64,000 bases of DNA, from positions 6,510,001 through 6,574,000 of the forward strand of contig NW_026889761.1 of NCBI RefSeq assembly GCF_033153115.1, given 5' to 3'. Each line of letters begins with the position of its first letter. Positions within the stretch are counted from its first letter, which is position 1. The position numbers were made by a program, and so were the translations under genes. Source of the DNA: Saccostrea echinata. Lineage: Eukaryota. This document shows, piece by piece, positions 20,848-44,718 of the stretch. The notes below the pieces were generated by a model. The model did not search any database. It saw only the letters and a program-made list of their open reading frames with translations, and had not been told where the DNA came from.

Positions 20848-23707
20848 TTAACACCCATAAACTTCAACACGAAGACCTGGTTTTCCGCCGTTATGCCACG
20901 TGAGAGGAACAAACCGGATGAACCTCGCACTGATTCTGCGCGGAAGGTAGTGCTTGATTACGGTGTCATAAGTACTGCTCCCAAAGAATTCCTAAAAAAA
21001 AAATACACGTCCTATTTTATAATGAGACTTCTACACATAAATTTCTATACTAGTATATCTATAATTTACTATATATTCAATTTCACTAAATAATTTTTAA
21101 CACTAGTGAAAATTGAAAAAGGACCAAATATCATCATATTTTTTAAGATTGTTTTGAAACAAGGACTTCAATAACATAATATATGATGTATTAGACTAAA
21201 GCTGTTTGAACTTTCTTTAAATGAAAGTTTTTACCTTTTGAGACCCATTACTCCCGATGACGTCATGAAAGTTGTTTCCGTCTGTGCTATACTGGAGTTT
21301 GTAGGACAGAGTGTAGTAGGTTGAGGAGCGATACCCTTGTGTTGCTACGGAGTAGACAGCACGAACTTGTCCCAGGTCAACCTAATCATACAAAGAGTTT
21401 ACGGGGCTTTGTGAATGATTGCAGCTGTGAAATAATTGAATGAAATAGTTTTAATTTGATCCTACCGACTACTAGATACAGCGTCTCAGACTACAGAACA
21501 CTGACAGTTATAATCGTGCCATTCACATATGTGAAATTACATTCTTACGGGTATATAAAACTTATAGAAAAGTTATACAGGCTGAACAGTTTTATTTAAA
21601 GTTGATGTGCAACACTGGTGCCCCCGTATCAAAGCTCACGACCAACATTAAATTTTTCCAAAAGTAGATCAAACTCCAAGGTTATTGTTATGATGTCAAA
21701 ATGAAATATGAAAGCACAAGCATCAACCGTTCAAAGTTATGGTCAAAGTTAAAGTTTTTGCGGACAATCTGACGGATCAAAAACTACATTTTATATGCCG
21801 CTGAATCTCCGATTACGTGGGCATAAGAAATTTTATTTTGCTATTCAGTATATATATAATTTATATATCATCATGATCATTATGAACCTGTAGCCATGAG
21901 TTGGATGTCTCTCCGATCCATCCGTCTCTACTGTGAAGTCGACCATTAGAGGCGAAGTGGTTGGAGAATGTGTAGTGCGCTGACATTTGGGCGTCAGGGA
22001 TTGTCTTTTTGGAATAGTCTACACCAAAGGCATTTGTATCACAGCCTAAGCAAACAATTTAATTAATCATGCATACTTGTAATTGCTTTGTGGTACCTGT
22101 ATCCAATTCACTTTGTTTAAATAATTTTCTTTTTTACATACGTAGTTCACAGCGTTGGCCTCCATAATCTTCTGAGCATGCGCACATGTAATTTCCAAAG
22201 TCATCTGAGCATGTGCCACCATTTTGACATGGATTGCTGCTGCACTGATCTTTCTCTGCAAAATATATTTGTACCTGTTTTGGTGATTCTTTTATTTAAG
22301 GTTAATAAGTAGATTACTTTTTTTAAATAAATATCTTTAAAAAAGTCAAAAACTAAACCTCTGATATCGATAGAGAATGTTCCGTCCGCGTATTTTCCAT
22401 GGCGATCAGTGGCACGAATTCCGAATGTGTATGACGCATCTATATCCGGTGCTGTGCCACTGATGACACCTGTGCTAGAATTCAAAGATGTTCCGGGTGG
22501 AAGATGACCGGAAATGACTTTATATTGTATGTTACCACCATCTGGATCCTATAATGATGAATTCCGATTTAAGAGAAACCAGTGTCTGATCTTTTTTTCT
22601 GAACATAGGGTCTATATCTACATTGTATATCCGACTCTGAGTGATTAAAACTAAACATTACTGAGGTATATGAAGCCCCCATGTTTACTGTCGAAACAAT
22701 TCATCAATGAATTATCGGAGGAAAAAATTTGACCAAAGAGACAAAATAATACTTATCAAACCAAATGAATATATGGTAAAATATTCCTTTTTTATAATTT
22801 ATTTTGTACTTCTTAATTTTTTTAATTAAGTTTTACAAGTTCTGAAATGCTTTATTAGTTACCACAGCCTCCACCGACACGGCTATTTTTGTCCCGGAAG
22901 TAAACGCTCCCAGTGACCCATGGACCGATTGTTTCGTCCATATCGGGGGAAGACTTTTAACTTTCTGAAAATATTTTACAATTTTTTATCAGGAAAAGGC
23001 CCAAGATGTATGAAAAATAAACTATTTTTTTTACAGTAAAAAGTTTGTTTCGAAAAGTATTTATAGCCATATGCATTAAATACTATCCTATAAGAGGAAA
23101 TAATGAATTATATACAGTATACATTAACGTACCTCGATAAATTTTCTGAGATCTGTCCCACCAATGATCACGGTTCCTCCAGACCCTGGTTTTAAAATAA
23201 CATTACCACCCACTCCAGCCTGTCGATAAAAGTAAATTGAAAAAATACAACTTGGGGAATTATTGATTCTAAATTCCTGCACGACCACTACTAACCTCAA
23301 AAGTTAGATCTCCGCCGGGCTCTGCTGACACATTAACGTTAGGATAGTCAATCTGGAAGAAGCTGAAAATGCCACATAACCGATGGAATTTTTGCAAATG
23401 AAAGAAATAGCAAATGATTTGTTTTTCTAGTCATGAAAATGTTAAAAAAAAAAATAAGAATCGGTAATAAGCTTAAAACAAAGAACAAGAAAACAACAAT
23501 GACAACAGCGAGGGACAAAAATAAACTAAAATACCTTCTACCATATTAAACATCTGAGTTGCCCGACAACAATTAACAAAATTTAAAAAGAAAAAAAAAA
23601 CTTTCAAAGCAGCTATTTCTAAATTTATATGTATATATATGTTATGTTTACCTTCCATGAGCGATCCCAGGAAGAATAACTATTAAGAATATAAAATAAT
23701 GCATCAT
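20848..23707 (-). CDS. Cluster gene A (subtype alpha): secreted cubilin-NTD-like / He_PIG Ig / EGF / F5/8C protein, 354 aa
   Basis: Exons 23707-23652, 23362-23296, 23219-23133, 22964-22863, 22548-22359, 22255-22142, 22045-21888, 21381-21235, 20991-20848, all GT-AG and open. SP MMHYFIFLIVILPGIAHG; DPDGG..SGHLPPGTSLNSSTGVISG..YTFGIRATD; CSSNPCQNGGTC; IPDAQMSA..WLQVDLG..ATQG..YSTDG..ARFIRFVP..LRVEVYGC. Confidence 0.92.
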
Positions 23708-23943
23708 AACTTTAGCTATCGATGTAGTGAGTTGATTAAAATGGGAAACACGTTAGAAAACTACTTCCTTGGCAATAGTCAAATCCCTATATTTACAAAA
23801 TAATTAATCATTCTATTTATTTTATTAATTACCTTAACGATATCCCTTTAACCCCAATGTCTTTGTTTCTAGAAACCTAAAATTTTACCCCACGCCTTTA
23901 TTTCTTTTGCATGACCTTGAGAGAATCTTGTACTTTCAAGGTT
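23708..23943. promoter_or_regulatory. Putative bidirectional promoter of genes A/B
   Basis: Only 236 bp separate the divergent start codons; function inferred from geometry. Confidence 0.6.
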
Positions 23944-26745
23944 ATGAAAATGGCTTCTAGACTCGTTCCTGTTGTACTTTTCATAAGTAGAATTTTCTGT
24001 GACGATGGGTTTGTAAATTTCTTATATATGTTACAAAATTTTCAGATAAGACAAACCCTTAATGCAATATCTTTGATTACAAATTTAAAATAATATTCTA
24101 TTTTCTGCAGTGTATTGGACATAGAATATCCAAGTCTCTCTATTCATGCACCTGCCGATGGAGACATTATTTTACAGGTAAGATGTGACCCCAAAAAAAA
24201 ACTGTTTTCTTTAGCTCAGAAAAAAATAACTTCTCAATATATATATCTTTAAATTAAGCACAGTTTTAAACGGTTGAATAACAGTGTAGGTATGGTATTA
24301 ACATTTATGGAGACTGATGAAACGTTCTCTCTTTTTAAAAAGTGTTCTCTCCTCTAACTCACCGTTGAAGACACTTTTTGGTTAAACTTAAAGTTTGAAT
24401 TCTACAGGAAATTGTTTTATTTAATCAAAAAAGAAAGGGCAATTGATTGTATTATTAATGAAAAACACGACATCGAAGCAATTCTGTCATTGTCTTTATA
24501 GTTATACAGTTGTTAAGTGAATAGAAGAATGTCATTAATAAAAAGAGAAATACCCCAAAAGAGTATAATTATTTTCTTTGTATTTTCATTTCTGCAGTCT
24601 GGTTACGACCTTAAAGATGTATACATCAAACCAGGCCCAAGGGGATCCGTAATATTTGAAAACCAAGACATTTTGAAAATCATAGAGGTATCACTGATCC
24701 AGCCTGTTAAATATATTGGTATCCTAAATAGTTTATTAAATCAGGTAGATGAATAGTGTATATATTTATTTACATCTTGTTACAAAGGTAGCAAAAAGCT
24801 TGCCTCCAGTTTGGTCAAAGCATGCGCACATGGGTTTCTTTGGAACATTTACTGGTGAGCAAAGAATAAACATCAAACTAGATGCCAAAGTAAGTCTTCT
24901 GTAAATTCCAGGCTATAATTAATTTCATTTCATACTTCATTAATTTTTCCTTTAATGAATAAATATATATTCAAACTCGCAAAGTATCGATTGAGACAAT
25001 TGTTATACTTCTAATTTCTTAAATAGGACCCCGAAGGTACAAATCTCCATTTCATGATAGTATCTGGTGACCTACCGGAAGGAGTTAGCCTAAACAACGT
25101 TACGGGTCACATAGAAGGAGTAATTCCGGATGTGGAAGAAATTTTCAAATTTGCAGTTCGTGCTGTTGATGAACATGGGAAATATGCTGACGCAATCTTT
25201 AAAATGGAAACTGTTGGTATAGTTTTTTATCATCTATAAAAATAACGATGAACGATTTATTTCATAGATGACACGTAATTTAATTCTTTCCCACAAAAAA
25301 ATATTATTTTAGTGAAGGACCATTGTCAAACAAATCCCTGCTTGCATGGCGGATCATGTACAGACACTAAAGGTTGGTTCAACTGTACATGTAAAAGTGG
25401 ATATGGAGGTCCCAGATGTGAGTTCTGTAAGTAAATGTTGTATATAAAACCTTGTTTTACAATCAGTTCTCTTCCTATAACCTGTAGAAATTCCATAACA
25501 TGACAACTTTTTCAATGACTTGAGTGTATTTTTACAACCTGCATACATACATACGACACAATGTGTATAAAAGGAGGCCATACGAAACTTTTTTTTTTTA
25601 AATATACTTTGCATATATTACAAATAAATCACATTATCAATATGTTTTTTTTTTCTTTTTTTTTTTACATTTCAGTTCTATAATTTCTTTACAGCTTGTG
25701 CCTCTCAAGCCTTGGGTGTAAGTGACAGAAACAAGGTACCAGATGCTCAGATGTCCGGATACCTTACCTACAGCTCTTACTTGGAATCGAATGGACGATA
25801 TCACGCTTCTGGGTATGGATGGGTGGGATCAAACAGCAACTCGTGGTTACAGGTGGATCTAGGTAATCACACATTCATGAGGTGTATATCCGAGTGCAGA
25901 AATAGTAAACAATCATCGGAGACACTAAGGCAATACATCCTTTTGTCAAAAATTATATCAATTCTGTACCATTTCTCTAATATATATTATGCATGAAGTT
26001 AGGAAATAACCATACTTGATAAAACATCCAAAAAAAAAAAAAAAATCCAAGTATTCTGAAACAAGTTTACTAGATAATCCGCCTTTTAATGATTAGTTCT
26101 GTACAAAACACAATTGCTGCCTCCTCCGTTTCCCCGGACAACTACGTGTAACATGTTATGAACTGAACTAAATAAAACGTTATTTGAATGATCGGGAAAA
26201 AATACCCAGCCTATTTTTTTTTTAATCTAAGACACGCTAGTCAGTTAATATGAACATAATACATAATATATAAATATAAACTGGGTATTGAGTATCGTAA
26301 TTAATTTCGAAAGGTAACCTGACTAAAGTGTATGCAGTAAGGAATCAGGGCTACAGTTCCACGTACTACAGCCGTGGGTACACTCTCTCTGTCAGCACAG
26401 ACGGCACTTCATTCCTATCCGTAAACAACACTAATGGAGGAATACATGTAAGCAGTACTATATCTTATTATGCAGAACTTAGCTATTTGTTCCTAGCTAC
26501 ATGTAGTAACTGAAACTATTAAAAAATCGCGACTATCTAGTATTACTGGCAATTGTATGAGGTGTTTATAATCACTCTGAATATCATCTACTGTTGTTTT
26601 CTTTCAGACGTTTTATGCCTCCACAGGAACTTACCAGTACTCACTTCCGGTTCCTATAGATGCGCGATTTGTTCGATTTCATCCAACTTCATATCACAAT
26701 AAACCACAACTAAAAGTAGAACTGTATGGATGTCATTATCAGTGA
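23944..26745 (+). CDS. Cluster gene B (subtype beta): same architecture, 355 aa
   Basis: Exons 23944-24008, 24111-24177, 24598-24687, 24788-24889, 25027-25216, 25313-25426, 25695-25862, 26314-26447, 26608-26745. Motifs [71 protein letters not shown]. Confidence 0.92.
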
Positions 26746-39783: not shown

Positions 39784-41012
39784 TCAATAAAAGACAATCA
39801 AAAAAATTGTTTCGTTAATGAAATGGACATTGATTTCCTCACTTTCATACACTGAGTACTTGTTTCTATGGTAGTTGTATTCACTACAAAATTAAGATTT
39901 TTTTCAATGTTTTTTTTAATATGACAATTAATTGTCATTTACAAATGTCAATTAAAAAAAATTAAAAATTTTATAGAAAGTTGTCAGTCTTTTCTGTCTA
40001 TCTGTCAAAAATTTCGGACCCTTTATTGGAATGGATTCCAACTGTTGTTATGCTTTTGACCATGATCTACATATATAACTAACGCATGGTCATACATCTT
40101 AAGTTGACGGTCATGAGGGCAATGGGATTTTGGCATCAATATACATTTTTTAAAGTCTCCAACTTTTTAACCTTTGATTTCTACGATACATACAAAAAAA
40201 ATCTCAATAACTCCGATTTCCCATGGAGAATAAAAAATGCAAAAAGCATGGAAGGTTTTTTGAGACAATAAACGATAATTGAAAAAAAAATACACAAATA
40301 TAACCAAACAAATATCAACAAATACAAAAATATCATACTCTCCTCTATGATTATTAAGTTTTTGAAAAACCATTTGTGCCATCTTCGAACCATTAATATA
40401 AGATTAAATACCGGTACAAGATAATTGTAAAACAAACATAAAGCCCGTTCTTGTTTAATTTAGTAGATGCTTTTGTTAATTTGTTTCAGTCTTTATTATA
40501 ATCACGTTCCAAAGAAATGTTGAATGTTGGAATAAGATGTTACATACACTTTTACCTCAATGTCTTGGAAGATTGATATAGGAAAAAAAAACAACAACCT
40601 TAAAGGGGTCGAATTTAGATTATTCCGAAATAAATAAACAAACAAACGATTTTCGTTTTCTTAAGAGCACTTGTTTTTGTCTGGTGAGAAAGAATTCAAA
40701 TCAGGCTTTCAATCTGCAACTTATTGTCGTCTAAGAATTTTATATGAAAATGCGCATGACATAATTTTTATTACGACCACAATCGTACTTGTTGAGTTGG
40801 CGTTGTCCTCTGTTTTGTTTACCGATACAATTAGCACTCATTTATTCTGGGCAGATCTGAGTTCTTGTAAATCTTTGTTGAATTTATTTTGAAACTATAA
40901 TATTAATAGCGTATAGGTTAATGGATACATAAATTGGTTGCTTTGGGAAAAAGGCATGAAGAACAAATGAGGATATTACGTGATTCAAAGATGGCGGAAT
41001 TCAAAATTCAAT

Positions 41013-44000
41013 ATGGTGCGTGACTGGGTTTTAAGTTTATTTTTCCTTTGGAATATTTTCATCCACCATCAAGCGACCGCACAAAATCACGAACAGTAAG
41101 TATTTTTTATGTAATATGTAATAATACAGAGAACGCAATACTTCTCAGTAATATACCTATCAAATAATATTAATTTTACAGTGCATAATTTATAACTTTA
41201 TATTGTAAACATTAAACCCTATCAAAGTCTGGTGTCATTACAGATAAGTATAACAATTAAAACTGTGTTTTGCCTTAAATTCCTTAAAATTTGTTATATC
41301 AAAATATACTGTAATATAGGCCCTATAAATAGGATATACCTGTATGTCATATACCTGCTGTATAAACCCGTATACGTAAATATTTTAAATCTGTCATTTA
41401 ATCAAATTTGAATCAGCTTCCAATAGATAATTCCAATCTCTATCGAGTTTATTTTCAAAATGGTATAACTGTGAAACCAGAGTAGTTCCGCAATTCGTTT
41501 TTTTTTTTTTTTTTTTTTTTTTTTATCAGCATGTACATTATTAATGACCGAGTTTTATTTAAGAGTTTTGCAGATTCACTTTCCGAGTGTTACGATCGCA
41601 GCCCAGAAGAATGGTTACCTATCGGCATCTGTAAGTCAAGTTTAGACTTCTCATTTAAAAGTTAATTAAAATATCGATTTTCCGGAAGCATAAAACATTT
41701 ACTTTATGTAAATTTTAATTTCTGATAATAAAACAGAGCATGGCGTACGTTTTATTTAGACAGAAGATGGCGGAAACATTCATATTAACTCCGGAGGAAA
41801 CACAACTGGTGTTTATTTTGAAAATGTGAACTTGTTCAGAATTATCCAAGTAAGAGCTAAAACATCCCATGGATGAACTTCTTTACATATAATTAAGGAT
41901 GAAGAATACTAAGCCATCTTACTCTACATCTGAAATTAACAGAATGTAATATTAAGTTATACAGACTAAATAATCTGTCTTTTTGCTATGAGACAGTATA
42001 CATATGTATATATAGTTTTATGGAAAATTTCAGCATCATGTTTATTTTTCACTCATCAATATTTCTGCTTTAAGTATCATTATACCAATATTCCTTAATG
42101 TATATCACAATTGCACCTGTCTGTCTTAATCAAGATTGCCTTGAGTCTTCCTCCTGTGTGGATAAACCATACGGACATTGGATACTCTGGAAGATTTGAG
42201 GGCGGAAAACATTTTGAAATTCCCTTAAAATTAATGGTAAGTCCCAACTTCTTTAAAGACTCTTAAAGTATCCTCCTCACTGAAAACTTGCCTTACCTTA
42301 TTTAACGTTTCTGTCAAAATAATTTATTCATATTTTTTCCTACGTCACATAATATATTTCACAGGTACCTCCACAACTTTTTTTTAATGGCAGGCATATC
42401 AGTGTGACTGTCAAAGATCTGGTGTTCTATAATAGTTTTTTTCCCCCTAATCTCTTCTGCTGTGTATTTTTTGCTTTCCGTCGTTTACTTTTCCATTTTC
42501 AATGTTATTATAATATTTTTGTATTCCTCCTTAAAAAATAAAATAAATCAATAGAATAAATATATAGCTCAGTCGCCTTGGCTTCGTACTTATAAAAGAT
42601 AACAAAGAACCATAAAATACTTTTTACAGGTACCTGGATCCGGAAATCTGACTTTTGAAATTGTTGCTGGATCACTTCCACCTGGAGTGTTCCTTGATTC
42701 AGGAAACCGCCGGGTATCCGGTATTGTACCAGATCACGATGCTGAGTACACCTTCACTGTAAGAGCTAAAACCGAATATGGAAAGTTTGCAGATGCCATT
42801 TTCCGATTTGATTCCTACGGTAAACGCCTGGAGATCTATAAATCGTTATAAATTGATACTTGTTTTTGAAGCATACAACTGGTGATACTCTTACAGAATA
42901 TTCTGATGGATAATTTTTCTGTTTTAGAATCGGACCAATGTCAAGAAGACCCATGTCACAATAATGGTTTCTGTAACGATACACGTGAAGGCATAGGCTA
43001 CACGTGCATATGTAATGGGCAATATGGAGGACTTCAATGTGATACAGGTTATAATGTACTCTCTCAAACCATTGTTAATATACACATGTATCAAAGTCAA
43101 CAATAATGATCAACAAGAGGTTTATAGCCTACATCAAATTTTGAGCAAAGACTTACACGAGTTTATACTAACTTTTCAAATATCCCACCATTGTTTTGAA
43201 CTGAATCATGATATATGCTTAGCTTATGTTAATATGTTTTACGGTATGACCATTGTGGCGAGCGCAGTTGTACCATCAAAAACCTACATAATTATGTATA
43301 CATGTACACAGCTTACACTTGCAACGTTGATGGATCCGCCTCTTCAAACTTCAAGAGACACAGTCTAGACTGTGACGTCACATGAAGTCGGAATTTACGG
43401 AGACAGCCGAACGTCTGGTTGAACGAGACTAGAGGGTCTTGTGCAATCATAAATAAAATACGTTGTAGAGTAGATGCAATTATTTTTTTGTTTCTTTTAA
43501 GCTCTCTGCAAAGAAATAAAAATAAACGTATCTCTTGGTAAGGAACAATTATCCTTGGTCTTTTGTATGTTTTGTAATAATTTCGCATGGAACCCTGGTA
43601 GCGAAGGAATTCTGGGAATGTTGCACCAGAAAATTTGCTTGACGTGTGTACAGATTTCGTTCCGAATTTCCTCTGTTCTTACACGTTAGTCTATTGAGCT
43701 CGCTGCGCTCACTATGGATATGAAGAGTCCATAATGATAATATAATTCTGGTAATTTATCCTAGATTGTAGATTAAACAGTCTAGAAATTAGAAACATAA
43801 ATGTAATACCGGATGCTCAGCTATCAGCATACTTATCACGAAATCAGTCAATGGCTACGGAGGCAAGATTTGATAACGAGGCTTCATCCGGGTGGTGTGG
43901 AGAAAACGCAAACTCTTGGATACAAGTAGATTTGGGTAGGTCATTGACTTTAAAAGGCTTTGTTGACAAAATAAATCCATGATTACATGATGATGTTATA

Positions 44001-44718
44001 AAAATAGTTTTGAAACATGTATTATATACTATACTCATTACAGGTGATAAGGGGAGAATATTTGCTGTGACCACTAAGTCTGGGGACAGTAACCGATTGC
44101 TGCAATCTTTCACTCTGTCTTGTAGTACCGATGGTACCAGATTCTCAGACATTCTGGATACTAACAATACAATAGCTTACGTAGGTTGTTATACAAAATA
44201 ATTTTTTTGGAAAGTGGCGCATGACAACCAGATACTTACTAGTTAGATGTATGTATCCTTCTAACGAAAAGCAAACGAATTTAAACTTCAGCTCGCTGTT
44301 GGCAAACAGATCTTGCTGAGAGGTTATTTTTTTGCAAGGTCAATGTCACATGGTGATGAATTCAAAAGTATGTCGCACGTTGTGTCGGATGTACAATGTA
44401 GGTTGTATTGAAAAACATTCATTGAAATATTCTGCAGTCCAAAATATGACAGTGTTTCACATTTTTTTTTTAGAATGTTTCAAAATATTAGGTCAATGTC
44501 TCACTATTAAGATCCGATTAACACGGCAAAGGGTAAAGGTGGAAAAGAGAAAACAAAAGTAAAATTGATTCTTTTTACTTCAGGAATTTTCCAGTGGTAT
44601 TGGGGCATTAACGCAGCCCCTTCCTGACCCGGCCACGTGTCGGTTTGTGAGACTTCATCCCAAGTCCTACAAAGGTCATCCGTGTCTGATGTTTGAACTT
44701 CATGGTTGTGTTCCTTAA
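41013..44718 (+). CDS. Cluster gene E (beta-type intron pattern, divergent orphan): same architecture, 364 aa
   Basis: Exons 41013-41095, 41564-41630, 41760-41849, 42135-42236, 42630-42819, 42928-43047, 43765-43935, 44044-44180, 44584-44718. Motifs SLPPVW, AGSLPPGVFLD..YTFTVRA, CQEDPCHNNGFC, IPDAQLSA..WIQVDLG..CRFVRLHP..CLMFELHGC. AATAAA at ~44767. Confidence 0.9.

Follow-up and report, generated by a model that had tools for sequence, protein, structure and literature searches.

Five paralogous genes, termed A–E, lie together in a 64,000-nucleotide stretch of the genome of the oyster Saccostrea echinata (NCBI RefSeq assembly GCF_033153115.1, contig NW_026889761.1, positions 6,510,001 to 6,574,000 of the forward strand; G000:C12:6510001-6574000), referred to here as the window. 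They raise the question of what is encoded by their second and third exons, and whether this segment is related to cubilin's N-terminal region. An earlier reading, made from the letters of the window without database searches (the sequence-only reading), had described these exons as a module resembling the cubilin N-terminus and had proposed that the gene products might be 'mini-cubilins'. The present analysis, which was computational throughout, partly supported the likeness to cubilin and the trimer reading, and somewhat disfavoured the reading of the products as mini-cubilins on amnionless. On balance, it was considered fairly probable that exons 2 and 3 encode a cubilin-type intertwined triple β-helix that locks He_PIG-EGF-discoidin arms into a secreted trimer.

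Module exons of the five genes

Genes A–E have the same layout, consisting of a signal-peptide exon, two short module exons, He_PIG on two exons, one EGF and an F5/8 type C discoidin domain on three exons (Table 1). The He_PIG, EGF and F5/8 type C assignments were backed by Pfam matches. A module on exons 2 and 3 of all five genes, as claimed in the sequence-only reading, was confirmed: the quoted peptides were present, and the splice borders were canonical, with an AG acceptor and a GT donor at all ten module exons and an exon 2/exon 3 junction in phase 0. A module profile of 56 positions, taken from columns 22–78 (31 sequences) of a family alignment (A3), scored the ten exons at 13.6–45.8 bits. 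Each exon matched its correct half of the profile, indicating that the presence of the module is not due to chance.

Whole-protein work was carried out on gene C, through the identical RefSeq S. echinata protein P0041, which is misnamed EDIL3, while the other four genes were searched one exon at a time. P0041 maps residue for residue onto nine exons of gene C, with all residues matched except one split codon, which confirms the exon join. The joined module was also encoded by intron-free, transcript-sized contigs of related species, for example P0043 (353 amino acids on a 1237-nt contig). The module is sited at the mature N-terminus directly after the signal peptide, exon 2 beginning at Ser22 of P0041; in orthologues, small residues precede the SFF with which the mature protein starts.

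Similarity to the N-terminus of cubilin

In human cubilin, the N-terminal region (residues 36–135, PDB 6GJE; Larsen et al. 2018, PMC6283879) consists of a three-turn intertwined helix, to which each chain adds an N-terminal hairpin, and of a coiled coil after it (PMC6283879). The oyster cubilin gene was located at G000:C14:14401532-14459002(-), where a dense run of CUB exons (G000:C14:14401532-14445042(-)) is preceded upstream on the same strand by exons for EGF domains and by several coiled-coil exons. Beyond these, still farther upstream, an exon of 43 codons at L012:3874-4002 (-), which begins PRMMTMNGHLIF.., matched human cubilin (6gje_B, PDB 6GJE) at E 0.0024 and was identified by this match as the cubilin N-terminus. 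The human cubilin N-terminal sequence given in the sequence-only reading was correct where it was checked against 6gje_B. Exon 1 of the oyster cubilin gene was looked for and not found. The coiled-coil region of oyster cubilin extends over at least four exons (L011 6772-9274 (-), G000:C14) and is apparently longer than the ~55 residues of the human protein.

The module profile was compared with 30 kb from the 5' end of the cubilin gene, translated in six frames into 1374 reading-frame pieces. The cubilin N-terminal exon ranked first of these at 19.3 bits (conditional E 3e-8, P about 1e-8), with the runner-up at 10 bits. Scored alone, the exon reached 20.9 bits, while none of 5000 shuffles reached 19.3 (maximum 11.3) and the reversed sequence gave 2.2. 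Comparison of A3 with the cubilin exon by hhalign returned a probability of 76.8% (E 2e-5), and a module-only profile compared with seven oyster cubilin fragments returned 91.2% with a score of 31.2, the maximum of 300 column shuffles being 16.9. A profile comparison with the cubilin N-terminal domain, which the sequence-only reading had put forward as its check, produced a match to the oyster exon at hhalign probabilities of 77–91%. In the reverse direction, the cubilin exon matched at least 14 proteins of the oyster module family, invariably at the module. The alignment between module and cubilin covers about 35 columns, with 28–29% identity to oyster cubilin. We infer that this module and that of cubilin most likely descend from a common ancestor.

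Predicted trimer

Trimerisation through the module had been proposed together with the likeness to cubilin. Three copies of P0041 residues 22–80 were modelled with ESMFold2 without an alignment, giving a homotrimer with an interaction prediction score from aligned errors (ipSAE) of 0.84, compared with 0.22 for the best of three controls. The partner predicted local distance difference test score (pLDDT) was 87, and three runs agreed in at least 98% of contacts. The lowest-error contacts linked residue i to residue i-10 or i-11 of the next copy (63/53, 62/52, 53/42, 52/41), which is the register of an intertwined triple β-helix. In the same model, residues 69–79 were in inter-chain contact, as in a short three-helix bundle, and the N-terminal hairpin of the family, SFF.I.YP, made inter-chain contacts through residues 23, 26 and 28.

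In an AlphaFold2 monomer model made from A3, the module had a pLDDT of 33–56, compared with 85–97 for the other domains, which is consistent with folding of this segment only in oligomeric form. The three chains are thus predicted to interlock into one β-helix, and the proposed trimerisation held at the level of prediction, in the advantage of the homotrimer over its controls, the intertwined register and the poor monomer. A search of the ESM Atlas with residues 22–80 returned only low-score leads (0.76–0.81: T4 tail fibre, bactofilin, PelX_Ig), which were not used as evidence.

Spread and conservation of the family

A profile built from the five exon-3 peptides (A1) found only these five loci in the 923-Mb genome. 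A weak match of the exon-3 profile (E 2.9) lay at L006 (G000:C30:11700219-11703284), inside an uninterrupted open frame of 1164 amino acids. Against 1.84 billion protein representatives, A1 matched 28 proteins at E<=1e-3. Some are exon-sized fragments, others have multiple motif copies, and four mollusc proteins, of Mactra, Mya, Solemya and the chiton Liolophura, are full-length. With a profile made from full-length members, the family was extended to about 30 proteins from 14 bivalve genera with a uniform architecture. The names carried by these relatives vary (lactadherin-like, EDIL3, MFGE8 or uncharacterised), and a literature search found no description of the family or of a cubilin-type module outside cubilin.

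Mean pairwise identity in alignment A3 was 49% for the module and 45–53% for the other domains. Invariant or nearly invariant residues were P29, G39, G46, P56, G60, V62 and D68, followed by P80-P81-x-W83 of He_PIG, and the invariant or nearly invariant Gly, Pro and hydrophobic positions repeat at a strict spacing of 10–11 residues. Positions 31 and 33 were hydrophobic in every member, and the mature N-terminus reads SFF.[IV].YP in most. All 32 members in A3 had at least one N-x-S/T site within the module and none (0/32) had a Cys there, which suggests that the helix surface is probably glycosylated and lacks disulphide bonds.

Three further proteins touch on the distribution of the module. P0016, a secreted metagenomic protein of 188 amino acids, has two module copies (16 and 19 bits) ahead of a coiled coil and a Cys-rich tail, and so places the module in another architecture. 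P0021 of Cyanophora paradoxa (2294 amino acids) has eleven weak stretches, ~190 residues apart, matching the central part of the module. In P0056 (Crassostrea virginica LOC111102480, 495 amino acids), a PF07910-bearing N-terminal part is fused to a gene-B-like protein without exon 2, whose sequence sets in at exon 3; this gene model is probably a chimeric annotation.

Comparison with known proteins

The likeness to cubilin lies in a secreted animal protein whose mature N-terminus is formed by the module, with EGF downstream, in short strands with Gly turns in a matching register, and in an intertwined three-chain β-helix (modelled here) leading into a trimer-forming helix. The differences concern both the module and what surrounds it. 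The family helix has ~12 residues (about residues 69–77) and passes straight into the LPPVW of He_PIG, whereas the cubilin coiled coil has about 55 or more. In place of the PRM.T docking strand of cubilin, the family has a longer hairpin, SFF.I.YP.V.V.AE, and its module is split by an intron, which that of cubilin is not. Cubilin has 8 EGF and 27 CUB domains, while the family has He_PIG, one EGF and one discoidin domain. No CUB domain was found in the five genes by Pfam, so an identity as cubilin (CUBN) orthologues was ruled out, the real cubilin gene being that on G000:C14. With neither CUB domains nor a long coiled coil, 'mini-cubilin' overstates the likeness.

Similar turns had also been noted in phage fibre proteins in the sequence-only reading, an observation that was borne out. 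The exon-3 profile found phage tail-fibre repeat proteins at E 3e-5 to 9e-4 among the 1.84 billion proteins. Two of these, P0020 and P0028, have the motif G-[DN]-[IV]-x-L-x-P-x-G-x-G-x-V-x-I-x-x-D in 5–6 tandem copies, and the cubilin exon matched the same repeats. Their assignment to phages was based on PHROG and Pfam matches: P0020 has Peptidase_S74 at residues 326–376 together with tail-fibre PHROG matches, and P0028 matched phrog_15769 in five stretches. PDB searches with P0020 and P0028 found no solved relative. The motif is common to the oyster module and the phrog_15769-type repeats; however, the phage proteins have 5–6 tandem units, one every ~37 residues, with a chaperone or receptor-binding part at the C-terminus, whereas only one unit and no S74 domain is present in the oyster proteins, whose other domains are of animal extracellular types. 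For the cubilin helix, only a likeness in structure, to phage and type VI secretion spikes, was reported in 2018 (PMC6283879).

Lactadherin (MFGE8) and EDIL3 resemble the family in being secreted and in combining EGF with F5/8 type C discoidin domains. The vertebrate proteins, however, contain 2–3 EGF domains, one of them with RGD, and two discoidin domains, and are without He_PIG or an N-terminal β-helix module, while the family has one EGF, one discoidin and one He_PIG domain, with RGD in 1 of 32 members. The RefSeq label EDIL3/lactadherin was rejected, as neither the number nor the types of domains fit.

Proposed structure and role

In the proposed structure, exons 2 and 3 would supply about 55 residues, the first of them at the mature N-terminus or no more than a few residues from it. 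Four short strands, ~10–11 residues apart and joined by Gly-rich turns, would come from each chain, followed by a helix of ~12 residues. Three chains would wind together into an intertwined triple β-helix closed by a short three-helix bundle. This would be the fold solved for the cubilin N-terminus, with a motif also found repeated in phage tail fibres. Three He_PIG-EGF-discoidin arms would thereby be locked by the module into a secreted trimer, with mixed trimers of paralogues as a further possibility. We infer that binding of a sugar or lipid ligand by the discoidin heads would gain three-fold avidity, as would be fitting for a protein of recognition or adhesion, and that the open N-terminal end of the helix would be capped by the conserved SFF.I.YP hairpin of the family or by another partner.

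If this is true, the module placed before lectin-type domains would be a reusable animal trimerisation device, and its ~55 residues would offer a small, tractable system for the folding of interlocked helices and the capping of their open ends. The 'lactadherin/EDIL3' labels on these genes would also be corrected.

Alternative explanations

A number of observations weigh against a cubilin-type trimeriser, and some of them favour an independent origin of the same fold, in which a triple β-helix trimeriser was recruited from a fibre-type repeat or arose by convergence. The resemblance to cubilin claimed in the sequence-only reading stood through the oyster cubilin exon, by hidden Markov model and hhalign, but not through profiles of exon 3 only (A1, A4), which reached neither human cubilin nor any other credible match in the PDB at E<=10. 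The cubilin sequences compared all came from oysters, so the link is one to oyster cubilin, and a search for N-terminal fragments of cubilin gave nothing but near-identical sequences from oysters. It was tested on one chosen candidate, and genome-wide the same score would have an E of about 0.4–1. Over its first 15 positions the module fails to align with cubilin, the PRM.T strand common to oyster and human cubilin is absent from the family, and no long coiled coil follows the module. Exon-3 peptides had no match in Pfam, nor P0041 in PHROGs. Three-chain β-helices, moreover, all need a strand, a Gly turn and a further strand in succession; scores of 16–19 bits were reached by single phage repeats and by the unrelated P0016, compared with 21 for cubilin, which itself matches phage repeats; and the two modules differ in their introns and flanks. 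Nevertheless, the best and longest single stretch (35 columns) is with cubilin, and both modules stand at the mature N-terminus of secreted animal proteins, ahead of a trimer-forming helix and of EGF. The PDB holds many β-helices and none matched the motif, indicating that it is not a generic β-helix signature. An independent origin was accordingly considered unlikely. A different objection is that the module is no oligomerisation device at all, being a flexible or monomeric β-hairpin linker or a pro-region, with an artefactual trimer model. The monomer model has low confidence at the module, complex predictors tend to stack repeated β-strands side by side, and the high trimer score may reflect memory of 6GJE or of phage fibres and so be a sign of likeness rather than proof. 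The ipSAE mark was passed by 21 of 30 proteins solved as one-chain pairs and by 0 of 23 solved as single chains, a calibration made with two copies, not three, of mostly microbial proteins; only 1 of 7 eukaryotic proteins without an older solved relative passed it, and the calibration is thin on both counts. Yet the module is conserved as strongly as folded domains across bivalves and a chiton, with its Gly, Pro and hydrophobic residues strictly spaced, the controls remained at or below 0.22 while three runs agreed, and the module is similar to the trimerising segments of cubilin and phage fibres. A non-oligomeric segment was considered very improbable.

The sequence-only reading had gone further, in suggesting that the products might be tethered by amnionless as interchangeable receptor heads. 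In the fuller form considered here, the open N-terminal face of each trimer would dock end-to-end on amnionless β-helix 1, and the five products would be membrane-anchored endocytic receptor heads. The module does resemble the cubilin helix, and the oyster genome has one amnionless gene (G000:C9:18759501-18761826). In 6GJE, the interface with amnionless is formed mostly by main-chain hydrogen bonds and a hydrophobic centre, with few side-chain contacts (PMC6283879), so that the sequence requirements for docking may be loose. Hydrophobic residues occupy family positions 31 and 33 throughout, and conservation extends to the extreme N-terminus, which would be expected of a surface for docking or capping. 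However, the interface strand of cubilin (residues 42–49, with Met44 at its centre; PMC6283879) corresponds to the PRM.T strand with Met44 that is kept from oyster to human cubilin and that the family lacks, and it is in this region that the first 15 profile positions fail to align. The SFF.I.YP hairpin, placed in inter-chain contact in the model, could cap the helix itself, and the architecture resembles that of soluble lectins. Because the docking motif is absent and the family has an N-terminal hairpin of its own, docking on amnionless was regarded as decidedly unlikely. The broader idea, that the N-terminal module of cubilin is a portable domain, delimited by exon borders, which serves both trimerisation and docking, and that mollusc amnionless is a general adaptor which also takes trimeric discoidin-lectin heads, was given the same low standing. 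If it were true, amnionless in molluscs would serve endocytic or recognition receptors beyond cubilin. The family would make amnionless clients other than cubilin a directly testable question. A secreted trimer locked by a cubilin-type triple β-helix is preferred to these alternatives.

Gene cluster

The features of the five genes are listed in Table 1. Exon 1 of gene A was looked for and not found. In gene B, the exon after exon 4 matched He_PIG (Pfam).

Table 1. Genes A–E and their exons, with positions in the window
Feature	Position	Strand	Content and evidence
Gene A	about 23650 to 20851	-	
Gene A exon 2	23296-23362	-	First module half, FFQIDYPNVNVSAEPGGDLTFE; AG/GT borders; 36.1 bits, profile positions 2-23
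Gene A exon 3	23133-23219	-	Second module half and helix start; 43.1 bits, profile positions 24-52
Gene B	23944 to 26733	+	
Gene B exon 1	23944-24008	+	Signal peptide; ATG, hydrophobic stretch and GT donor read from sequence
Gene B exon 2	24111-24177	+	First module half; 21.6 bits
Gene B exon 3	24598-24687	+	Second module half; 31.6 bits
Gene B exon 4	24788-24889	+	End of short helix (VAKS), then LPPVW, the He_PIG start; no long coiled coil between
Gene C	36112 to 33624	-	
Gene C exon 1	36050-36112	-	Signal peptide, P0041 residues 1-21; exact P0041 map
Gene C exon 2	35891-35959	-	Mature N-terminus SFF.., first module half, P0041 residues 22-44
Gene C exon 3	35631-35720	-	Second module half and helix, P0041 residues 45-74; within modelled trimer interface
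Gene C exons 4-9	33624-35539	-	He_PIG, EGF, F5/8 type C (discoidin); Pfam and P0041 map
Gene D	about 36400 to 39765	+	
Gene D exon 2	36647-36713, start approximate	+	First module half; 18.5 bits
Gene D exon 3	36812-36904	+	Second module half; 37.8 bits
Gene E	about 41500 to 44709	+	
Gene E exon 2	41574-41630	+	First module half, most divergent copy; 17.2 bits
Gene E exon 3	41760-41849	+	Second module half; 13.6 bits

Genes A and B, and likewise C and D, form head-to-head pairs with short common upstream regions (window positions 23362-24111 and 36112-36650). C-like and D-like genes also adjoin in other bivalves, with adjacent LOC numbers in Ylistrum and a common contig in Pecten, Mizuhopecten, Ruditapes and Mya, and the gene cluster therefore appears to be old. 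Between genes B and C, window positions 32049-32839 (-) contain tandem repeats of ~162 bp with near-identical open frames (MCSKVSEFSFSPWGSNGG..).

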